Assembly (NCBI GenBank): GCA_964270895.1
Contig: OZ185439.1
Origin: Podarcis filfolensis
Lineage: Eukaryota
Reading direction: 5' to 3' (one strand)
Length of the DNA stretch: 64,000 nucleotides
Of the stretch, positions 1-33,100 are shown in pieces (the stretch's first letter is position 1; the number at the start of each line of letters is the position of its first letter). A model generated the notes under the pieces. The model searched no databases, had not been told where the DNA came from, and saw only the letters and a program-made list of their open reading frames with translations. The position numbers were made by a program, and so were the translations under genes.

Positions 1-606
1 AACTGAGATCTCATATCATAGTTTGAAGCTGGATGACAAATCATTATTCATCCATGATTAAAAGGTTACCCTGACTAGCATTCATCAACCAATACTGGGG
101 CCAATAAAACACATCAGGAATTTGCCTGTAATTGATGAGCAGCTGGCAGGTGGAGGAGAAGAAGCATGGGATCCTGTGGTCTGTTCCTAATCTCTGAACC
201 AGCACTAAGGGATGGGAAACAGTATATATGTGCTGGCTAGAGGAAGAGAACTACAGAAAGACAGAGTCATAGCTGAAAAAGCCCTCACTAAATTTAATTG
301 ACTTAAATCTTATGGATGACTACTCTGAAGTCACATTATTTTCAAATGGAGCTTACTCTCAGGCAAGTGTGCAAATGACGACAGTCCAAGTGTGGCACCA
401 ATCATTGCAGTCTTATACCTTTCTGCAGGCATATGTACATTCCCTACACATTGTTCATAACTTGTTTGAACTTTTAGGCTCCTGTACACCCCCTCCTGCC
501 TTCAAGGAATGAAATATTGCATGTATGGTGTCTTCCCCTGCTTGATAGCATGGGCTGCTTGATATTCTGATTTATAAGGATCAAAGTCAAGTTCAAGATG
601 GCTTAC

Positions 607-717
607 CGCCTCCTTGATAATTTCAAATCTTTTTTCATCAATCTCAAAGGTAGCCATTTTCTCAACAATCTTCTTGAGCAGGATATGCTGCTTGTCATTG
701 TAACCTTTTACGGAAAG
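607..717 (-). CDS. IDE: IDE exon 16 (111 nt)
   Basis: [37 protein letters not shown]; donor GCG|GTAAG. Confidence 0.97.
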
Positions 718-3700
718 CTATAGGAAAAGGATATATAAGCTGTTATGTGTTTGAAATATTCTGTTTTCTATAATTCTAGATTGTCCATCAAAGCAGTAAA
801 CAGCAACTTCTTAACACTGGGAAGCATTCTCCCTTATTTCACCAGAAATACTACGGTTTGCCCTTTACTACATGGAAGTCTATGTGTGATATTATTACTG
901 CGTTACTTTTTCCCAGGGCTTAACATCTTCTATTACAATTACAAAGCAAAATTATAGTGGAAAACAAATATTGTTCCATGCTGCAAAGCAATGCTTCAAA
1001 TGTCAGGTAATAGAAAACGGAATGAAATGTTGTTGCTCTTTCCCAGGATTAAAATCAGAAAAGCAATATGCTAATTGGAATGAAAAGAGTAGTTTATCAT
1101 TCTTTTTCCAAATGAAGAATAAAAGTATCCTAGGAACCCAAATCTAGAAAAGAATATAGGAAAGAAAAACTTCTGTTCCATAGTTAATAAAGCAGAAGAG
1201 TCCATTATATACTGATTTTTAAGAAGTAGGGACTTACAAATGTTTAAGACATCAAGATGACAGGTTCATAAAATCATTGCATAACTCGGTTGACCACCAT
1301 ACACACAAGGCTGTATTGAACGCAATGCCAACTGGGTGCTGCTTGTGCAATGTGACTTCAGTTTCCTCTCCCTTTCCTGCCCCCCCCCCAACATGCTAAA
1401 CAGGCTTCTCCACCCTTCTGGAGCTTACTCTGAAGGTGTATAGGGAGCTAGAGGGGACAGGAGAAGAAGAAAAAAGAGGATTTGCAGGTACTGATGACTA
1501 GCAGCATCTGCAAAGCTCCTTGCGCATATAAAGGATAAAACCTTTGTTTTAGCAACACCTTGCTGCCTGCAAGATGCACCGACTCACCTGTCATTTGTAA
1601 TGTCTGGTATGTGGGAGGCTCTGCCAACCTTGCAAACTAAGCCTCTGAGGCAGATCCTAATAAGGATCTGGCCTATGAAGTCAAAAGGGCTCCCCAACCC
1701 CTGTGCTACATGATGAAAGAAATTAGAATGGACTTGACTCATATTGACTAGATCCCAGGTTGCAGTCTGAAAACATAACACCTTGGCAACCTTGCTGGTG
1801 CTAAATAGGTCTGATCAGATGAGAGGCTGCTGAACAACACTTTGTACACCACACCGAGTTCCATGATGGAAAAAATGGCAAGCTACAAATGTAAATAAGC
1901 AAAAATACTATAAAACTGTGCTGTTTTCCCCCAGCCAATTTTAGCACTGAAACCAATACATTAAAAAGCATGCTTTTTAGCAGCCCCATGTTTCATCAGA
2001 TAAAGAAAATGTATGACCTACGCAGAGATTACTGGAGTCTTAAAAGTAAGTGCAATATTTTGGGAAAGTTTAGGGAAGAAATAGTCATGTACTAGAGATC
2101 ACTTTTTAATGTACTCATTTGTTATATAAGGACCCTGTTTCACAAGTCATCTTGATCCTGAAATGCAGTCTTCTCATACCAATAATGCAGTTAGTAATAT
2201 TTAGTAAATTGCATGTCTGATGAAGGTGGTTCTGGCACACAAAAGCTCATGCTGCAATAAATGTGTTAGTCTTCAAGATGCCCTGCAGTACTTTGGTGGT
2301 GGCTGGGGTTTTTATTTTTTAAGTATATATTAGGATCTAAATGACTGAAAGCCAGCAGAACTCCATGTTTAACTAAAAACATAGCAACTCGTTCAAGGTT
2401 ACTAGACTATACAAATGAGTAAGAAATGCAGATCAGTAATGCATCAGCACACTTCTCAGTCATAAAAAAACGATTCCAATCATGGCCAAACCATTCAATA
2501 AATGGTTATAAAACTGCACAAGTCTCACACCCTTATGATAGGGATGCAAAGGAGGACAAAACCAGTAGCCATTTTTTCAAGCAGCACTCAACTCTCACGC
2601 CATCTAATTTTTGCTTGTTCNNNNNNNNNNNNNNNNNNNNNNNNNNNNNNNNNNNNNNNNNNNNNNNNNNNNNNNNNNNNNNNNNNNNNNNNNNNNNNNN
2701 NNNNNNNNNNNNNNNNNNNNNNNNNNNNNNNNNNNNNNNNNNNNNNNNNNNNNNNNNNNNNNNNNNNNNNNNNNNNNNNNNNNNACTAACAAAAAAGAAA
2801 AACAAAACAAAAGGATGCTTTGATACTTCAAGGAGCGACACGGTAATGGATGAAGAAACATGACTGAAGAGTATGTATATGCAGCCTCGTAACTAATATT
2901 CTCGGGAATGAAACACTGGGAATTTGATTTCTCATTCGGAACTCTAGTGGAATGGAGCAGTATCTCAACTCCAATTCGGACTGTAAATTTGAGTTTTAAG
3001 TAAAAAAAAATATATATATTGCAAATATTCTGGTGAATGACGTAAAATGAAGTGCAAAAATTGCTGAATGCGAATGGAAATGTTGAAGACTCCAGAAATT
3101 TCAAATTATGAGAAAGTATAGCTAGAAATCAAGGTTGAAAAAGAAACTGAAAAAAACAGGTTCTCAGTTGGAAAAGCCATTGAAAAATTGCTTCCAGCAA
3201 ATCAATTTTTTTCCTTCTGATTAGTGGAAGTAAATTTAAGGCTTTTAAGATTNNNNNNNNNNNNNNNNNNNNNNNNNNNNNNNNNNNNNNNNNNNNNNNN
3301 NNNNNNNNNNNNNNNNNNNNNNNNNNNNNNNNNNNNNNNNNNNNNNNNNNNNNNNNNNNNNNNNNNNNNNNNNNNNNNNNNNNNNNNNNNNNNNNNNNNN
3401 CCACGTAAGCAAATGGGCTGGAAGAAAATGTTGAAAGTAAAATATCTGCTGCAATTACTTCCCAGTTCTGCTAGATCCTCCATACTGGATCTCAAGGACA
3501 CAGTAAAAAAGAAAATGCTGCTTCCTGTTATGAGAATATTAAGACAGTATGTGAACACACACAGCTAAAGGAGGAAAGATTGATTAAACAATTCCATACT
3601 GAGACACACACACACACATATGTATTACATCTATGTTAAATCTACTGCGTAAGATTACACAAAACCATTTTTAGCTCACATTATTCTGAATTTGCTACAA

Positions 3701-6700
3701 AGACAAATGCTTACAAACAAGTACAAAACATATGTAAAACACTTAAAATATACAATGAGTTAAAAATCGCCACAGTGGATAAATCTAAAAGCTTGCCAAG
3801 TAGGACAGTCTCACACTTAACTTGCTTGTCATCAGGATTAAACCTCACTGAACACAGCTGCTGGTTTCACAAAATCAGGAAATAGCGCAGTTATAGGTTT
3901 GCTACCAAACCACTGGCATTTTCTATATTAGGCACAAAAATATCCAAGTTTTGTATTTAGCTATAGCACATAACACTACCCTGATATATTTTTGCAATAT
4001 CCCAAGGAGGAAGAGTACGCTGCACAGACTTCCAAAGGTAAAGACAACTCAAAGACTCAAGTCATGTTTCAACAATACTGCTTCGCACCAACATATTAAG
4101 AGTGACAAACCAGATTAAGAGCAGAAGTAATTTGTGTACAGTATGGTCTAATATCTATTATGGATATATACATATAGCAGTTAAAAATATGAAATCATCA
4201 ACATCGCCCAAGTAAATTGATCACAAAGCAACATTTCTTACTGAAGAATTCTATCATAAGTAAAATAAAAAGTACAACAATATTCAGCATGTTAAAGCAA
4301 AATAATAATTATGGGGCAGAATAATGATTCAAAGAACAAAACATTTAATTAAAACCATGCATCTCTTTTTGAAGAAAAATCAGAATGTTCTTTTAATAAT
4401 GTGAAACAAGTGACCCTTTGCACGATGATTTCTGACATGCAAACCAACACTATTTATTCAGAAGTTAAGTTTCACTGGGCTCAATCAGACTTGCTCCCAG
4501 AAATGTATGCGGCCTCAATATATGTTAAAACTCACGGGACAATGTTGCATTTTCATATACATCTTATCTCAAGGCTATTATTGTAGAGACCCATCACAAG
4601 CAGAAACAACATAATCAGAAAAGGCTGAGACCTCATTTTTAAAACCTTTTCAATACAAAACTCATCAGAAGATAAAGAAGTTTGGGGGGGATGACTGCAT
4701 TTTACTTAATATAGGAATTATCATTTCAAGATACATAACCACCCAAGTTTCTGTCTATAAACTCTCTTACAAAACCAAGCAGTACTGCAGTTCACATGCT
4801 TCCTCAAAAATCAAAATGGGACCATGAAATTAGCTAGCAATTATATTAAGTGTAAAAACCTAACTTACTTGGTTTTATCTTAAATTTCATTTTCAGTGCT
4901 GTAAAATGTTAAGTATGCTTCAACTTTAACAGGAAATTTGACTTCAGAACCAAGCAATTTCACCAAAGTAAGTTTTTAACTGGTCTATACAAATATCCCC
5001 AGCTCATAATGCTCAGCCTTCCTTATGAATTGAGCAGCATTACACTGAGAAATTATCAGGCTTATGAGCATATTTAGCTCATAAGAAGCTCTGGAACATA
5101 TATTTTCTGTTTGAACGTTCAGCTGCTTTGGGAAAACTACACACCACATTCCAGACACGACAGAAAATGAAGGTTTTGTAGAAAGGCACCCTGGTTGTTG
5201 CTAACATTACAAGTAAGTTTATACTATAGGGATGTTGAGTTGAGGCTCACAGATTAGAAAGGTGTGCTTGGGCCCTCTTGAGATCCCAGTGACATTGAAT
5301 CAAGAGTGCAACAGTTTCCAAATTGGGGTATGTGAGAGCTATTATCTGATGGGGGGAATATTATCAGCAATATTAGCAAATCCCAATTTCAAATTGAGTA
5401 ATTCATCATCACTAGATACAAAGGGAGACCTCTGCGGGTGATCAGTTGTACTGCACTGGAAATGATTTAATGATTCAAGCACAGCCAATGCAGAGATGCA
5501 ACAGTATTATCTGGCCCAGAGGTCTGGCGGGAAGGAGGCAAGACCTGAAGCGTAGTTTATGCAGAACCGCAATGGTGATTATGGGTTCACAGGAATGCTA
5601 AATATATTTATTTTATTACTTGTTGCATATTAACTGTTCTCAAAGCTCCCAAGCTGAGACAGACCAAAACAAAGATGAATTATTTTGTGTGCTAAAGAAT
5701 GTTTTTAAAATCAAAAGCATTAAAGTGCAGTTCTAAAATTGTTCTGGACATTTGAAGGGAGAGGAGAATGAAGACCTGTTCATTTATTTCCCTCCATATG
5801 ACTGTACATGGAGCTGGATCCACTGGCCTCATTGATATTCCCCAACACGCGGAGACAGCAGGGGATAAAACAATGGTGGGAGGCTAGAGCAGGGTTTCCC
5901 AAACTTGGGTCTCCAGCTGTTTTTGGACTACAATTCCCACTTTTGCCTTTTTAGGATGCAGCTTGAAGTGCTGCAAAGGCTCAAGAAGTGATTCTTCCAC
6001 AGAATATGGTAGGGCACAAAATGCATGTGTACAGTAAGGGAATTATGGCTCTACAATACTAATTCCTGCTATCATACCAGTTTCTGACAAATACAACAGT
6101 CCTACATTCTACTTCTTGGACAAATCTTACTTTTAAAAAAACCTTCCTCCAAAATCAGATGCTCCTAGCACACACAAAAATAACTTTAGGGGTTAAATAA
6201 GGATAGTAGAATGGTACCAAAGTTGTATAAAAGTGGACTTGTTGAGGTCAAACAAGGCACTCATCGGGATCATAAAGCTGAGGGACTGCTCCACTGAATA
6301 GACTGAAAGCTACTTTCCTTTGAGGAATGTATTAATCAATCAAACAAACAAACAAACAAACAAACAAACAAACAAACAAACACCCATGGCTTGGATATAG
6401 CCATACATGTGTGGAAGCATGTTTCTGTGCATATATTCTCTGTGCTGTGAAGCTCTATCACCAGAGGTATGTTTGGTGTAGGAGTGTGGTGAAGGAGGAG
6501 AGTCATTAACAGCTCTTGGATTATGTTTAAAACACTCTTGTGGCACTTTAACAGTAACAAATTAAGATGCTAAAAGACTTTGTTGCTTGTGCTGCAACAG
6601 ATTAACATGGTTGCTCCTCTGGAACGTGGACAATACTTTTCAGCCAGCACAAAACCTGTGCACACTGTTGCACATCCATAATGCTGGATTGCAGCAATAA

Positions 6701-6932
6701 GTGGGAACCGACAATCTCAGTTATTCCACTGTAGCAGCCCCAAGCATGTCTAGAATGATAAAATGTTTTCTTGAATGACTCTGCTTAGAATGATAAATTT
6801 TAAAGACAAGAATGCATGCATACCTGAAAAATTCAAAGTTGAGACAAGCTTTGGGTAGGAAAAATTTGTCATCTTGCTTGAACCATAGCTTGCACATAGC
6901 AGTGTCCTGAGTTTAAGAAAACATACATTTTC

Positions 6933-6992
<60 letters not shown>

Positions 6993-9079
6993 ATTACAAA
7001 CTGTATTGTGCTGTCTAAACACATGCTTATATGCTAACATTTCTGAGATGGAAGGAGGACCTCTAAGCCCTGTGGGACTTTTGCCGGTATGAACACTAAA
7101 TCCATACGCCGTTTGATTGCACCACTGCCAGGTAAGTCTGGAAAGAAGAGACAGCTATGGCAGGGTCTGGGCTTACCTGATATTGGGATGACCCATTAGG
7201 AGTTCATCTCCTAACTCCGCAATTTGAACTCACCTCCACCACTATGTGAAGGTTTATATACTTTGAATACGGGGCAAAAAGCCAACTGGATAGGAGCTAG
7301 TCACCTCTTAAAATAAAGATCCAATTTTCATTCATTTTTACAATCTATTCTTACAATACTGTTCATATTATAAGCAGTCTACTCAATGACCTTAATCTTT
7401 CAAAAGCAATTCAGGAATTCATATTCCCGAAATTCCACCCACAACTATTAAATACATATGCTTACCTTGATAAGAGTAGGGTACTGTGGTGCATCCTTCT
7501 CTAAAGGTACAATTTCAAAGTTAGTAGGGATAAATTCATTCTTCATTGGCAGCTTGAATTTCCCATTGAGGTCAGCATTTTGCCATTTCTACATTCAATG
7601 TGCAAACAAGAGGATAGTTTTGTTATTATCCAGTGGGTGGGTTAAAAAAAATTGTGCTGCAATTGTGTTGCTCTATGAAGGATTATCGACCTCTGATGAA
7701 TCATGCTTCTTCAAAATTCATGACAAAATTAATTCTTACTAATGTTTCAAATTATTTAATCTGTATGATTCCTTGCAGTTCACATAATACCATTTAAGTT
7801 TGCTTTTAACTATGTTCCATAAACACTTAGAACATAGCGCTGACTGAGGGCTAGAGTGCATGCTCTAACCACTGTGCAGAACTACTAAGAAATGCTTTCT
7901 GCAATATGTATCACCATGTGAGCAGCTGGTTTTCACTCTTAGCAATATGTGAAAATATTACACAAATCCTCCAAACACAGCTGCGTGTGTGATCATAGCT
8001 GTATGTTCAGCTAGGTGCTCTGCACATAGTTTCTCTCTCGCTAAAGCTTATTAATCATAGTTTCTCTCTCGCTAAAGCTTATTAATTTTTTTTTGGGGGG
8101 GGGAGGTGTTTTAAGGGTCCAACATGTATAGTATTGGCTGCACCACAAAGAGATGTTCAAGGATTTGGTTCACATTTTGAAGTGAAGTCTATTTCCCCCC
8201 ATAACACCAGTTGAAATTAACTAACACCAATGTGACACACTTATACAAGCAACAGTATTAGTTGCTTTTGTAAACAACACAAAATAAACTTTATTGTAAG
8301 CAGTGGCGGAGCAAGCCGATCGGGCGCCTGGGGCAGCACACGTGCCCTGTGCCCAGGGGCGAGGCCAGCCGCCCGTGGGGGCGGGCCAGCCACCCACAGC
8401 GGTGGGGCGACCCAGGGCAGGACGCTCCGCGGGGCCTCCGAGGAGTCTGCCTGCCTTCTCCCACTCAGCCGCCCTACAGCTGAAGGGAAGTTGGCGGGCG
8501 GACCATTTGGGGCAGTGCGGAGCCTGCAGGCACTCAAGCCACCGCATCACTCCCAGGAGAGACGCCTGCCTTGGGTGTGCTGCAGGCCCCGCAGTGAGTG
8601 CCGCCCAGCATTTTGTCACCCCCTTCAATGGCGACACCCAGGGTGGACCGCCCCCACCGCCCCCCTTCCTCCGCCCTGATTGTAAGAAGTGTGAAAATAC
8701 TGGTTACATATTCAGTTTACCACCAACTTTCTCACCACACCTTAATGACTTCATCAGAAATTGCCTCTTGCTTGTACTGGGTTCCATACCATTTTTCTGT
8801 TCTATCAGTTTTTCCTTCAAAAGACTTAGAAACTATTGCAACCCTAAAAAATAAAACCAAAACATAGTAAGTAAGCAAGCATATTACCTCCCCTGCCCCC
8901 AAAATACTATTCAAATAATTCTGCTTGGTCACTAAGTTCAAAGATTCTGTTGTTAATACTGTAAATTCTATATGTCCTATTCTATTTTTCCATGTAATCC
9001 TCCTGTCAGTAAAACAAAAAGCAACATTTATCCATATCAAAATGGCTATGTTAAACGACCCCTTGTCATAAAAGATATA

Positions 9080-30100: not shown

Positions 30101-33100
30101 TTGTACGATGGCACACATCACGGATGCAAAGTTTGAGTTGCTTTCAACAGAACATTTTTATGATGAAAGTGGCTTGCAACTAAGATCTAAACAATTGCGT
30201 GGGAAGGAGTTACAGAAAGGATACACACAAAAACACATACCGTATTTTTCGCTCTATAACACGCACCAGACCATAACACGCACATAGTTTTTAGAGGAGG
30301 AAAACAAGAAAAAAAATATTCTAAACGAAATAGTGGATATATGATTTTTGTGGTTCATGCTGTGGCCACAGACATGTGATCTGACAGTGAGTTTGGAGTA
30401 GCCCAATGCAAAAATCCTGAGGATCCATGTGGATCCATGCCTTGTATCCACGGAGGAGGGAAGGAAGGGGAACCATGGATCCTCTGCTCACGACTGTAGC
30501 AGATCCCCCCCGTCACCCGCAGGCATTCGCTCCATAACACGCACAGACATTTCCTCTTACTTTCTAGGAGGAAAAAAGTGAGTGTTATGGTGCAAAAAAT
30601 ATGGTACGTACTCCCAAGCTGTTTATAAAGGTTTTTAGAGTGATTTAGAGAAATGCTTCTGTCATAAGCATTTATTTTCAGTAATGATACACTATGTTTA
30701 TAATTTCTAGAAATAAAGAGGACTCATAGTGGTATACAACACAATAAACTAAAATTAAATTATGAACATAATGACATTAATTGAAAGAAGAACCCTCACA
30801 AGTGGTGTACAAAGTTCTGGCATTTCAGGTGCTGTCATTAAAGGGTAGCCACAAAGGAAGTGACTCAAATGGAATAACAGGAAGGATAAATGCTGTTATT
30901 CATGTATTGAGCAAGGGGTTGGGCTTAATGGCTTACAAGCCCCCCCCCCCCCAAATTCAATCATCATATACAAGACTATTTGGTGGCAATAACAGGCATT
31001 AACATGCTTAGAAGAGGAAACAGAGAAGTTTCACCGAAGTGAGAATAAGATAGAGGAAAAAATACACAACAGTTCATTTTGAAAAGATGTTTTTTCATAC
31101 CATGCACAGTGCAGCAACACAGAAGCAGATGCTCACAAAGCCTGAAGTTCTCTGGCAATAACTTAATGGGAAAATATCAGTGAGGTGCACAGGTGTCTGC
31201 AAGAGCTGAAGTGAAAGGTTAATTTACTGCAGCACGTAGGACTTTATTCGCACAATGAAAAGAAAGATTGCTATCTCATATCAAAACAAGTAGGAAGCCC
31301 AAAATGATTCAGCTACATCCCTAGCTGACTATCTTGCATCATTCAAAGGTCACTGTTTTTCTACAGAATTGTGAACTCCATCCAACAGATATAATAACCA
31401 GATATATTCACCTGATACCTCTCTTTCCTCACAAAATAAAAGGTCAAGCACTCCTGATCTTACTGATTATTTGTCAATGCCTTCAACCTTTGATATACCT
31501 GAAGTATAATTTTCATCCCAGAAAACCAGATAAGACTCCCTGCCCTTGCTCTGGTCTGCATAATTATCTCTTCTTTTTAGTCTTTGTAGAACTTATTTAC
31601 TCATTTTATTATGATTATCCCCTCCACCTTAGGAAAATAATGAAACTAGCTTTTTATCTTGCTTCCCCTTTTCCTTCATTTCCCTTGTAGTTTAAGATCA
31701 CATTTCTTTCGGCCTTCCAACAGTATTTGTCTCTAATTGGCTTGTTTCCCACTGTCCCTTCCATTTTCACAAGGGCCCACACAATCTAATGTTTCAGTGA
31801 CAAAGGATGGAGACAGACTACTAATCATGGGAACACTACTTAGAATTGATCCCAATGGTAGTTTAAGTGTGTGATGAGCTGGTTGCTGAGAGGGTTCTAC
31901 TCACTTACTTCATAGGGTACTTATAAATAGGAACCATGTGACAAACTGGTATCTGTTTCTATCTGGGAAATATGTCAACCAATATTTTAAATATTAAGCC
32001 ACCCTGTATACTACAAAAAAACCTAGTTAAAAAACTGGACTGTACTCTCGCCAGCTGTTTTAACCAAAAAAAGTAACACATTTTTTCCTAACCACTTTTG
32101 TTGTTTCCTGTCATCAATTCTTATCTAGTAGGTACCTTAGAAATATAAAAGAAAGCCAACCCATACCCTCTCTTTGTTATTTGCTGCTGTATGACCACCT
32201 TATAACAGGGATGGCTAACCTCAGTTCAGGTCTGATCTGACCCCTTAAGCAATTTTTTTCTGGCCCTCCCAGAACTCTGATTTTTGCTGCAGAAGCAAAA
32301 AAGAAAGAAAATGAAACAGACACAGTGCTGGAGTGGGAAGAGCCCAGTGCCCCAAAGGGAATTCAAATCACTCTCCAGTGTCATGAGATTGATCATCTGA
32401 GCAGAGAGGGAATGATAATCACCCTCAGCGTGGATCAGCTGGGGTGGGGAGGCTGTCTGCCTGTGGATATTTTGTGTAAGAGTGTCTGCACACATGCAAC
32501 ATGCAAGTACATTAATGAGTGTGTGGCAGCCACACCTACTACTGGAATGGGACCCCTAAGTGAATCCCTCAAGTCAAAGAAAGCTACCCTGCCTTACAGA
32601 GAGAAGACTCAATTAACGTGCTACATAAATTTTCTATCAAGATACTAACCTTTTATGAAATCAGCAACATAGGGCCTGATCTATCAAGAAAAATGGCTCT
32701 CTTGCTTTAAGCCTCTGTGAGAAACAGTTATATATCAGTAATTGGGATGAGTTCATCAGTTTGAAGCACCTGCGTTATCTCACCCTCCTGTGTCTCAAGG
32801 TCAGCGACTGGGCCTGCTAATTGAGAATCGACTTCAGCTGTGAGAATGAACATATGCCCAAGTTCAGGAAGTTTCTAAGCATTTTCATTGGCTCAGGGGA
32901 CTCACCCCAGTTGCTATACCTTTTTACTATAAAGTTAGCCATTGCCTTCACCCCTTTGTCACTTCTTTCCTGTTGCTTGTACCTGTTTCTTTGTAATGCC
33001 TGCAAGATCCTATTTTCTGTGCTAGGGAAGCTTTCGGGTCACTGTTTTAGAAAGTTAGTTTCATGATTCCATTCATAATTGTCAATTGTATTTAAGATCT

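Follow-up and report, generated by a model that had tools for sequence, protein, structure and literature searches.

The IDE locus and its two tandem acceptors

We analyzed a 64-kb stretch of DNA (64,000 nucleotides, hereafter the window) from contig OZ185439.1 of the Podarcis filfolensis assembly GCA_964270895.1, the minus strand of which is occupied by the gene for insulin-degrading enzyme (IDE), and examined the site between IDE exons 14 and 16, where two runs of N very probably cover a pair of alternative exons, 15a and 15b, and where a short invariant element of the intron between them may pair with either exon. Exons 2–14 and 16 were readable, and an exon-by-exon map obtained by tblastn with a fish IDE protein (P0015) and two lizard IDE models ran from 23.4 kb down to 0.6 kb. 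Across these exons amino-acid identity to the fish protein was 67–98%, and differences from the two lizard models amounted to 0–3 residues per exon, with more in exon 2. The alignments identify the window as exons 2–16 of a squamate IDE gene on the minus strand, and place the host gene among IDE orthologues with exons 14 and 16 flanking the site. Because exon 14 (83 nt, the length found in all five comparison species) ends in a split Ser codon and exon 16 opens in phase 0, one exon of 3n + 1 nt is required between them; a preliminary description of this DNA had claimed such an exon, and the phases of both flanking exons agree with it.

Two acceptors could be read directly at this site (a slash marks the start of the exon). 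The first, ttttcttccag/CCCATTTGCTTACGTGG at 3417, gives AG+C for Ser followed by PFAYV before the letters turn to N from 3400 onward. The second, at 2785, is a long pyrimidine tract, tttttcttttttgttag/T, ending ttgttag/T, which gives AG+T for Ser and is followed by N from 2784. Both acceptors (AG/C at 3417 and AG/T at 2785) share one phase, and each completes the Ser codon of exon 14 and enters an N-run, as had been described. The 2785 acceptor contained 17 pyrimidines in 20 positions and YAG, with no nearby upstream AG. Acceptors as strong numbered 18 on the minus strand of the window, three of them in the intron at issue, a rarity which argues that the start of an N-run one base later is not due to chance.

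For comparison we used the IDE loci of two lizards, Phrynosoma platyrhinos (L001) and Lerista edwardsae (L002), and of the pufferfish Takifugu rubripes (L003), the bird Turdus rufiventris (L004) and the sturgeon Acipenser sinensis (L005). The Phrynosoma and Lerista IDE proteins differed from that of the window at several residues, so both loci come from species other than that of the window. Between exons 14 and 16, all five relatives carried two homologous exons, 15a followed by 15b. Each was 145 nt long and bounded by an AG acceptor and a GTAAGT donor, and 24 of 48 residues (~50%) were identical between the 15a and 15b proteins. The spacer between them measured 514 nt in Phrynosoma, 491 nt in Lerista, 514 nt in Turdus, 502 nt in Takifugu and 1909 nt in Acipenser, and a spacer of 487 nt was predicted for the window. 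At ~30950–31060 of the sturgeon locus, exon 16 lay on the strand opposite to exons 14–15b, likely an assembly inversion or misjoin in a record labelled UNVERIFIED_CONTAM.

The window contained only two N-runs, 3400–3253 and 2784–2621, and their lengths were assessed by counting the letters from a conserved anchor before each run to one after it. For the first run the anchor-to-anchor count was 152 in the window, compared with 154 in Phrynosoma, 154 in Lerista and 152 in Turdus; for the second it was 179, compared with 177 in Phrynosoma and 178 in Lerista (with the T-run anchor adjusted by hand in Lerista). Since these counts match those of the relatives, the N-runs are, by this alignment, true-length masks rather than gaps of unknown size, keeping the true length to within 0–2 nt with both sides collinear. 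The gap placeholders in the Phrynosoma and Lerista assemblies, unlike these runs, consisted of 100 or 10 N. The three visible flanks (upstream of 3417, the spacer, and downstream of 2621) were collinear with the 15a/15b flanks in both lizards, with collinear flanks in the bird as well, and the window matched the two lizards identically or almost so in its acceptor contexts. Because the flanks are collinear, the hidden lengths match and both exons are present in five relatives, we hold with high confidence that the N-runs hide orthologues of exon 15a (3417–3273) and exon 15b (2785–2641); the IDE 15a/15b pair that the preliminary description had placed under the N-runs is thereby supported, indirectly but strongly. 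The two would be homologous 145-nt exons derived from an ancient tandem duplication, one or the other of which would be spliced between exons 14 and 16.

Age, annotation and isoforms of the exon pair

In a database search, proteins were scored on their match to the exon-15 region of a fish 15b-type isoform; 300 were returned, and 120 cluster representatives of these were listed. Among these 120 listed matches, 99 contained a clean 48-residue 15b-type segment, with a mean identity of 94% to the majority sequence. The carriers included many teleosts, bichir, coelacanth, lungfish, at least eight frogs, a crocodile, several birds and mammals, and the proteins were annotated as "insulin-degrading enzyme isoform X2" or similarly. 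From this distribution of sequences, the pair predates the split of ray-finned and lobe-finned fishes. It had been proposed earlier that the pair predates the mammal–reptile split, which is correct as far as it goes, but the presence of 15b in ray-finned fishes, coelacanth and lungfish makes the pair far older. That isoform X2 models exist in many species implies that 15b has transcript support elsewhere. The models also mean that the IDE exon pair is already in public annotation and is not new, the lizard being one more species. When full-length non-vertebrate homologues were scored against both exons, 64 of 66 were closer to 15a than to 15b, and by this measure 15a is the ancestral-like copy.

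In the proposed scheme 15a would be the default exon and 15b would give the isoform reported to be catalytically weaker in mammals. Reviews citing Farris et al. 2005 (PMC7830943) state that 15b replaces 15a and reduces catalytic efficiency, and in mouse liver 15a exceeded 15b by ~1000-fold (PMC8467815).

Nine gene models in the database contained 15a and 15b in tandem. In two lizard models, P0156 (L001 37673–38476) and P0159 (L002 53995–54775), the exons were bridged by a mini-exon translated from the conserved spacer block, and the seven others (sturgeon, two birds and four mammals) fused 15a directly to 15b. These models are annotation artefacts, and the lizard mini-exon is false. P0156 and P0159 prove that both exons exist in those lizard genomes, not that the exons are co-spliced.

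Reading frame as a filter on inclusion

As 145 is not a multiple of three, inclusion of neither exon or of both breaks the frame. Joining exon 14 directly to exon 16 in the window gave a protein ending in FFSFP, with a stop three codons into exon 16, while inclusion of both exons (14+15a+15b+16) in the relatives produced a stop 16 nt into 15b in the two lizards and the bird and 67 nt into 15b in the pufferfish. The frame filter was seen for skipping in the window and for double inclusion in relatives, and the earlier claim that both or neither exon shifts the frame was confirmed in these two settings. In either product the premature stop falls long before the final exon junction, and by established rule mRNAs that skip both exons or include both would be removed by nonsense-mediated decay (NMD).

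An invariant intronic core and its predicted partners

A 21-nt stretch of the spacer, hereafter the core (Table 1), was unchanged in the window and the five other species, which include pufferfish, sturgeon, bird and lizards. It lies within a block before 15b that also contains UCUU-rich stretches, the likely branch-point region, the pyrimidine tract and the AG. When all sequence from exon 14 to exon 16 was compared among the five other species, the only 12-mers common to all of them fell in the core, in positions 71–93 and 99–110 of 15a, and in positions 60–84 of 15b; the constitutive exons 14 and 16 contained no 12-mer shared by the five. Third codon positions were invariant at 61% of sites in 15a and 55% in 15b, compared with 26% and 35% in exons 14 and 16, respectively, and within exon positions 60–94 the invariant third positions numbered 8 of 12 in 15a and 10 of 12 in 15b. 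A search of Rfam returned no family at the core and two sub-threshold matches elsewhere.

The core was reverse-complementary to positions 75–95 of both 15a and 15b in the relatives, the corresponding partners being masked in the window. Ungapped pairs with 15a and 15b numbered 17–18 of 21 in four species, with one central mismatch in the duplex with 15a and two in that with 15b, and in the sturgeon 17 (15a) and 16 (15b). In four of the five species the core outranked all other intronic 30-nt segments (160–880 scored per species) as a duplex partner of each exon. In folds of the ~800-nt sequence comprising 15a, spacer and 15b, the core was predicted to pair with 15b at P ~0.8 in the two lizards and the bird, and with 15a at ~0.77 in the pufferfish, and in folds that omitted 15b, as before its transcription, it was predicted to pair with 15a at P 0.76–0.80 in all four species. 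The minimum-energy prediction and the centroid both showed the core–15b hairpin, and the hairpin folds had z-scores of −2.25 and −2.73. The 3' extension of the core differed between pufferfish and tetrapods, and pairing persisted there in a shifted register.

Feature coordinates and other observations in the region

The coordinates of the features are collected in Table 1.

Table 1. Features between IDE exons 14 and 16, with positions in the window except where a comparison locus is named.
Feature	Position	Strand	Remarks
IDE exon 14	6824..6906	minus	83 nt; ends TTT TTC AG/gtatgc; AG = first two bases of a Ser codon
Exon 15a, visible part	3401..3417	minus	first 17 nt; C closes the Ser codon and PFAYV follows; same acceptor context as in Phrynosoma
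N-run 1	3253..3400	minus	148 N; probably covers the remaining 128 nt of 15a, the donor and ~20 nt of intron
15a–15b spacer, predicted whole	3272-2786	minus	487 nt
15a–15b spacer, visible part	2786..3252	minus	76–80% identical to the spacers of two other lizards
Conserved block before 15b	2786..2905	minus	~120 nt; nearly identical in three lizards and the bird
21-nt intronic core AGGCTGCATATACATACTCTT	2867..2887	minus	unchanged in all six species; candidate docking element with complementarity to 15a and 15b
Core in relatives	L001 38237-38257; L002 54531-54551; L003 8333-8353; L004 32254-32274; L005 23087-23107		
Exon 15b, visible part	2785	minus	single base T (AGT = Ser); relatives open the exon with TCG
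N-run 2	2621..2784	minus	164 N; probably covers the remaining 144 nt of 15b, the donor and ~20 nt of intron
IDE exon 16	607..717	minus	111 nt; phase 0; opens CTT TCC GTA = LSV

The masked stretches, 2621–2784 and 3253–3400, coincided with the two exons of by far the highest nucleotide conservation in the region, whereas exons 14 and 16, whose protein conservation equals that of the masked exons, were left unmasked. It is useful to know that true-length masks lie exactly over the region's two most conserved exons; speculatively, such a pattern could come from masking by nucleotide similarity to some other genome.

Repeats and inverted repeats within 600–7000 were limited to short, chance-level matches. 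In the intron after 15b, a 16-nt word at 2565–2580 (TTGAAAAAATGGCTAC on the gene strand) matched positions 650–665 of exon 16 (TTGAGAAAATGGCTAC) at 15 of 16 letters, probably by chance; the intron patch around it was conserved in the two other lizards. Microsatellites occurred in the introns on either side of exon 14, at 6335–6385 and 6930–7000, one of (GTTT)n and a long one of (AAT)n.

A possible RNA switch and competing explanations

Taken as a whole, the observations are likely best explained by a masked 15a/15b pair, a filter of reading frame and NMD on its products, and possibly an RNA switch. In such a switch the core would pair with the same homologous segment (exon positions 75–95) of either 15a or 15b, never of both, and whichever exon was paired would be concealed from the spliceosome. 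A duplex with 15b would close a loop of ~150 nt containing the branch point, the pyrimidine tract and the acceptor of that exon, in keeping with the minor share of 15b in mouse liver. We rate it at close to an even chance that a competing-pairing RNA switch sets the choice between 15a and 15b. The fuller proposal, a bistable switch more than 400 million years old in which the core pairs with the (N/K)EY(A/T)YAA coding segment of 15a or 15b, is put forward tentatively, at slightly under even.

Several points weigh against the overall explanation or against the switch. The letters, donors and reading frame of 15a and 15b are masked in this genome, and 15b may be disabled here. As to the switch, the sturgeon core, in a spacer of 1.9 kb, ranked third as a partner of 15a and eighth as a partner of 15b. 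The duplexes showed no compensatory covariation, the core and its partners all being invariant. Pairing of 17 of 21 positions, G-U pairs included, arises by chance ~10 times per 50–70 kb, and the paired exon segment is partly palindromic, which inflates the complementarity. Thermodynamic folds of 800 nt are weak predictors of structure in vivo, and the DNA-level comparison covered lizards, a bird, a pufferfish and a sturgeon.

The main alternative is that the frame/NMD filter acts together with protein regulators, the core being a protein-binding site and its complementarity to the exons incidental; PTB-type repressors on the UCUU-rich block upstream of 15b could, for example, have this role. 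Such an arrangement is possible, although we lean towards doubting it. It would suit the pyrimidine- and UCUU-rich character of the block before 15b and its conservation in lizards and bird, the minor and tissue-biased use of 15b in mammals, a complementarity of 17 of 21 that is not very rare, and the absence of covariation. It fits less well with the finding that nucleotide conservation in the region is highest in exactly three stretches, the core and its two complements, with the top rank of the core as partner of both exons in four of five species, and with the frozen synonymous sites of the paired exon segments.

A second alternative is that only 15a is real, with 2785 being a chance pyrimidine tract or leading to a decayed copy, and the second N-run an unrelated gap or masked repeat. 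Only a single base of 15b is visible, the remainder being masked, and the intron is AT-rich (GC 0.29) with frequent T-rich tracts, but the ~120 nt before 2785 and the sequence past 2621 are orthologous to the flanks of bona fide 145-nt 15b exons in two lizards, the hidden length of the second run agrees to 1–2 nt, acceptors this strong are confined to the 18 counted on the strand in 64 kb, and 15b is under strong purifying selection across vertebrates, which together make this reading very unlikely. Steric exclusion, with the branch point of the spacer intron too close to the 15a donor, has a precedent in OGDH exons 4a/4b, where distant branch points enforce exclusion despite a long intron (PMC7969005), but is exceedingly improbable here given a spacer of 487–514 nt and AG dinucleotides 33–45 nt upstream of the 15b acceptor (gaAGtatcaaAGcatcc), which leave a short AG-free zone in which a proximal branch point is expected.

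Steric exclusion is not supported for the window, in agreement with the earlier judgement that the predicted 487 nt is too long for it, with spacers of 491–514 nt in the two lizards, the bird and the pufferfish and AGs that suggest a proximal branch point. The accompanying claim that another exclusion mechanism is needed stands only in part: a candidate RNA switch may add to exclusivity, but the frame/NMD filter, which that account already contained, is itself one such mechanism.

Significance and relation to known systems

As a finding, the exon pair is ordinary and does not change what is known of IDE; what merits follow-up is the invariant 21-mer together with its complements in the two exons. 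If the switch reading is true, the element would be among the most deeply conserved competing RNA structures in vertebrates and would account for the frozen synonymous sites of both exons, and antisense oligonucleotides to the core could shift the ratio of the efficient and inefficient insulin- and amyloid-beta-degrading isoforms. Conserved competing pairing of this kind would also matter for efforts to modulate IDE activity in diabetes and Alzheimer research. Main texts on competing RNA structures, conserved complementary regions, tandem-duplicated exon substitutions and human mutually exclusive exons do not mention IDE, most of their supplements lying outside the search. A description of the core or of a switch was likewise not found in the searchable literature, which did not extend to the original 2005 paper and most supplementary tables, nor was a mechanism that keeps 15a and 15b exclusive and 15b rare in liver found in that literature.

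The closest known system is the mammalian IDE 15a/15b pair itself (Farris et al. 2005, as cited in PMC7830943 and PMC8467815), which has the same gene, the same position, an equal-length replacement and a canonical 15a, the lizard locus being its orthologue. We see no essential difference between the two: the pair is described for human and mouse, whereas sauropsids and fishes are annotated but undiscussed. The pair also fits, without difference, the class of mutually exclusive exons that are frame-incompatible and kept in check by NMD (Hatje et al. 2017, PMC5740500).

With regard to the proposed pairing, the IDE layout is the same as that of the arm-duplication model (Ivanov and Pervouchine 2018, PMC6071210), in which a duplicated stem arm yields two selectors for one docking site. 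ATE1 exons 7a/7b (Kalinina et al. 2021, PMC7797038) likewise have a conserved element between tandem-duplicated exons that is complementary to each and pairs with one at a time. The ATE1 switch has been proven by compensatory mutants, whereas the IDE pairing is predicted, and the ATE1 partners R1 and R4 are intronic and overlap 3' splice sites, whereas the candidate IDE partners lie inside the coding exons (positions 75–95). Unlike in ATE1, conservation of the IDE element extends to ray-finned fishes.

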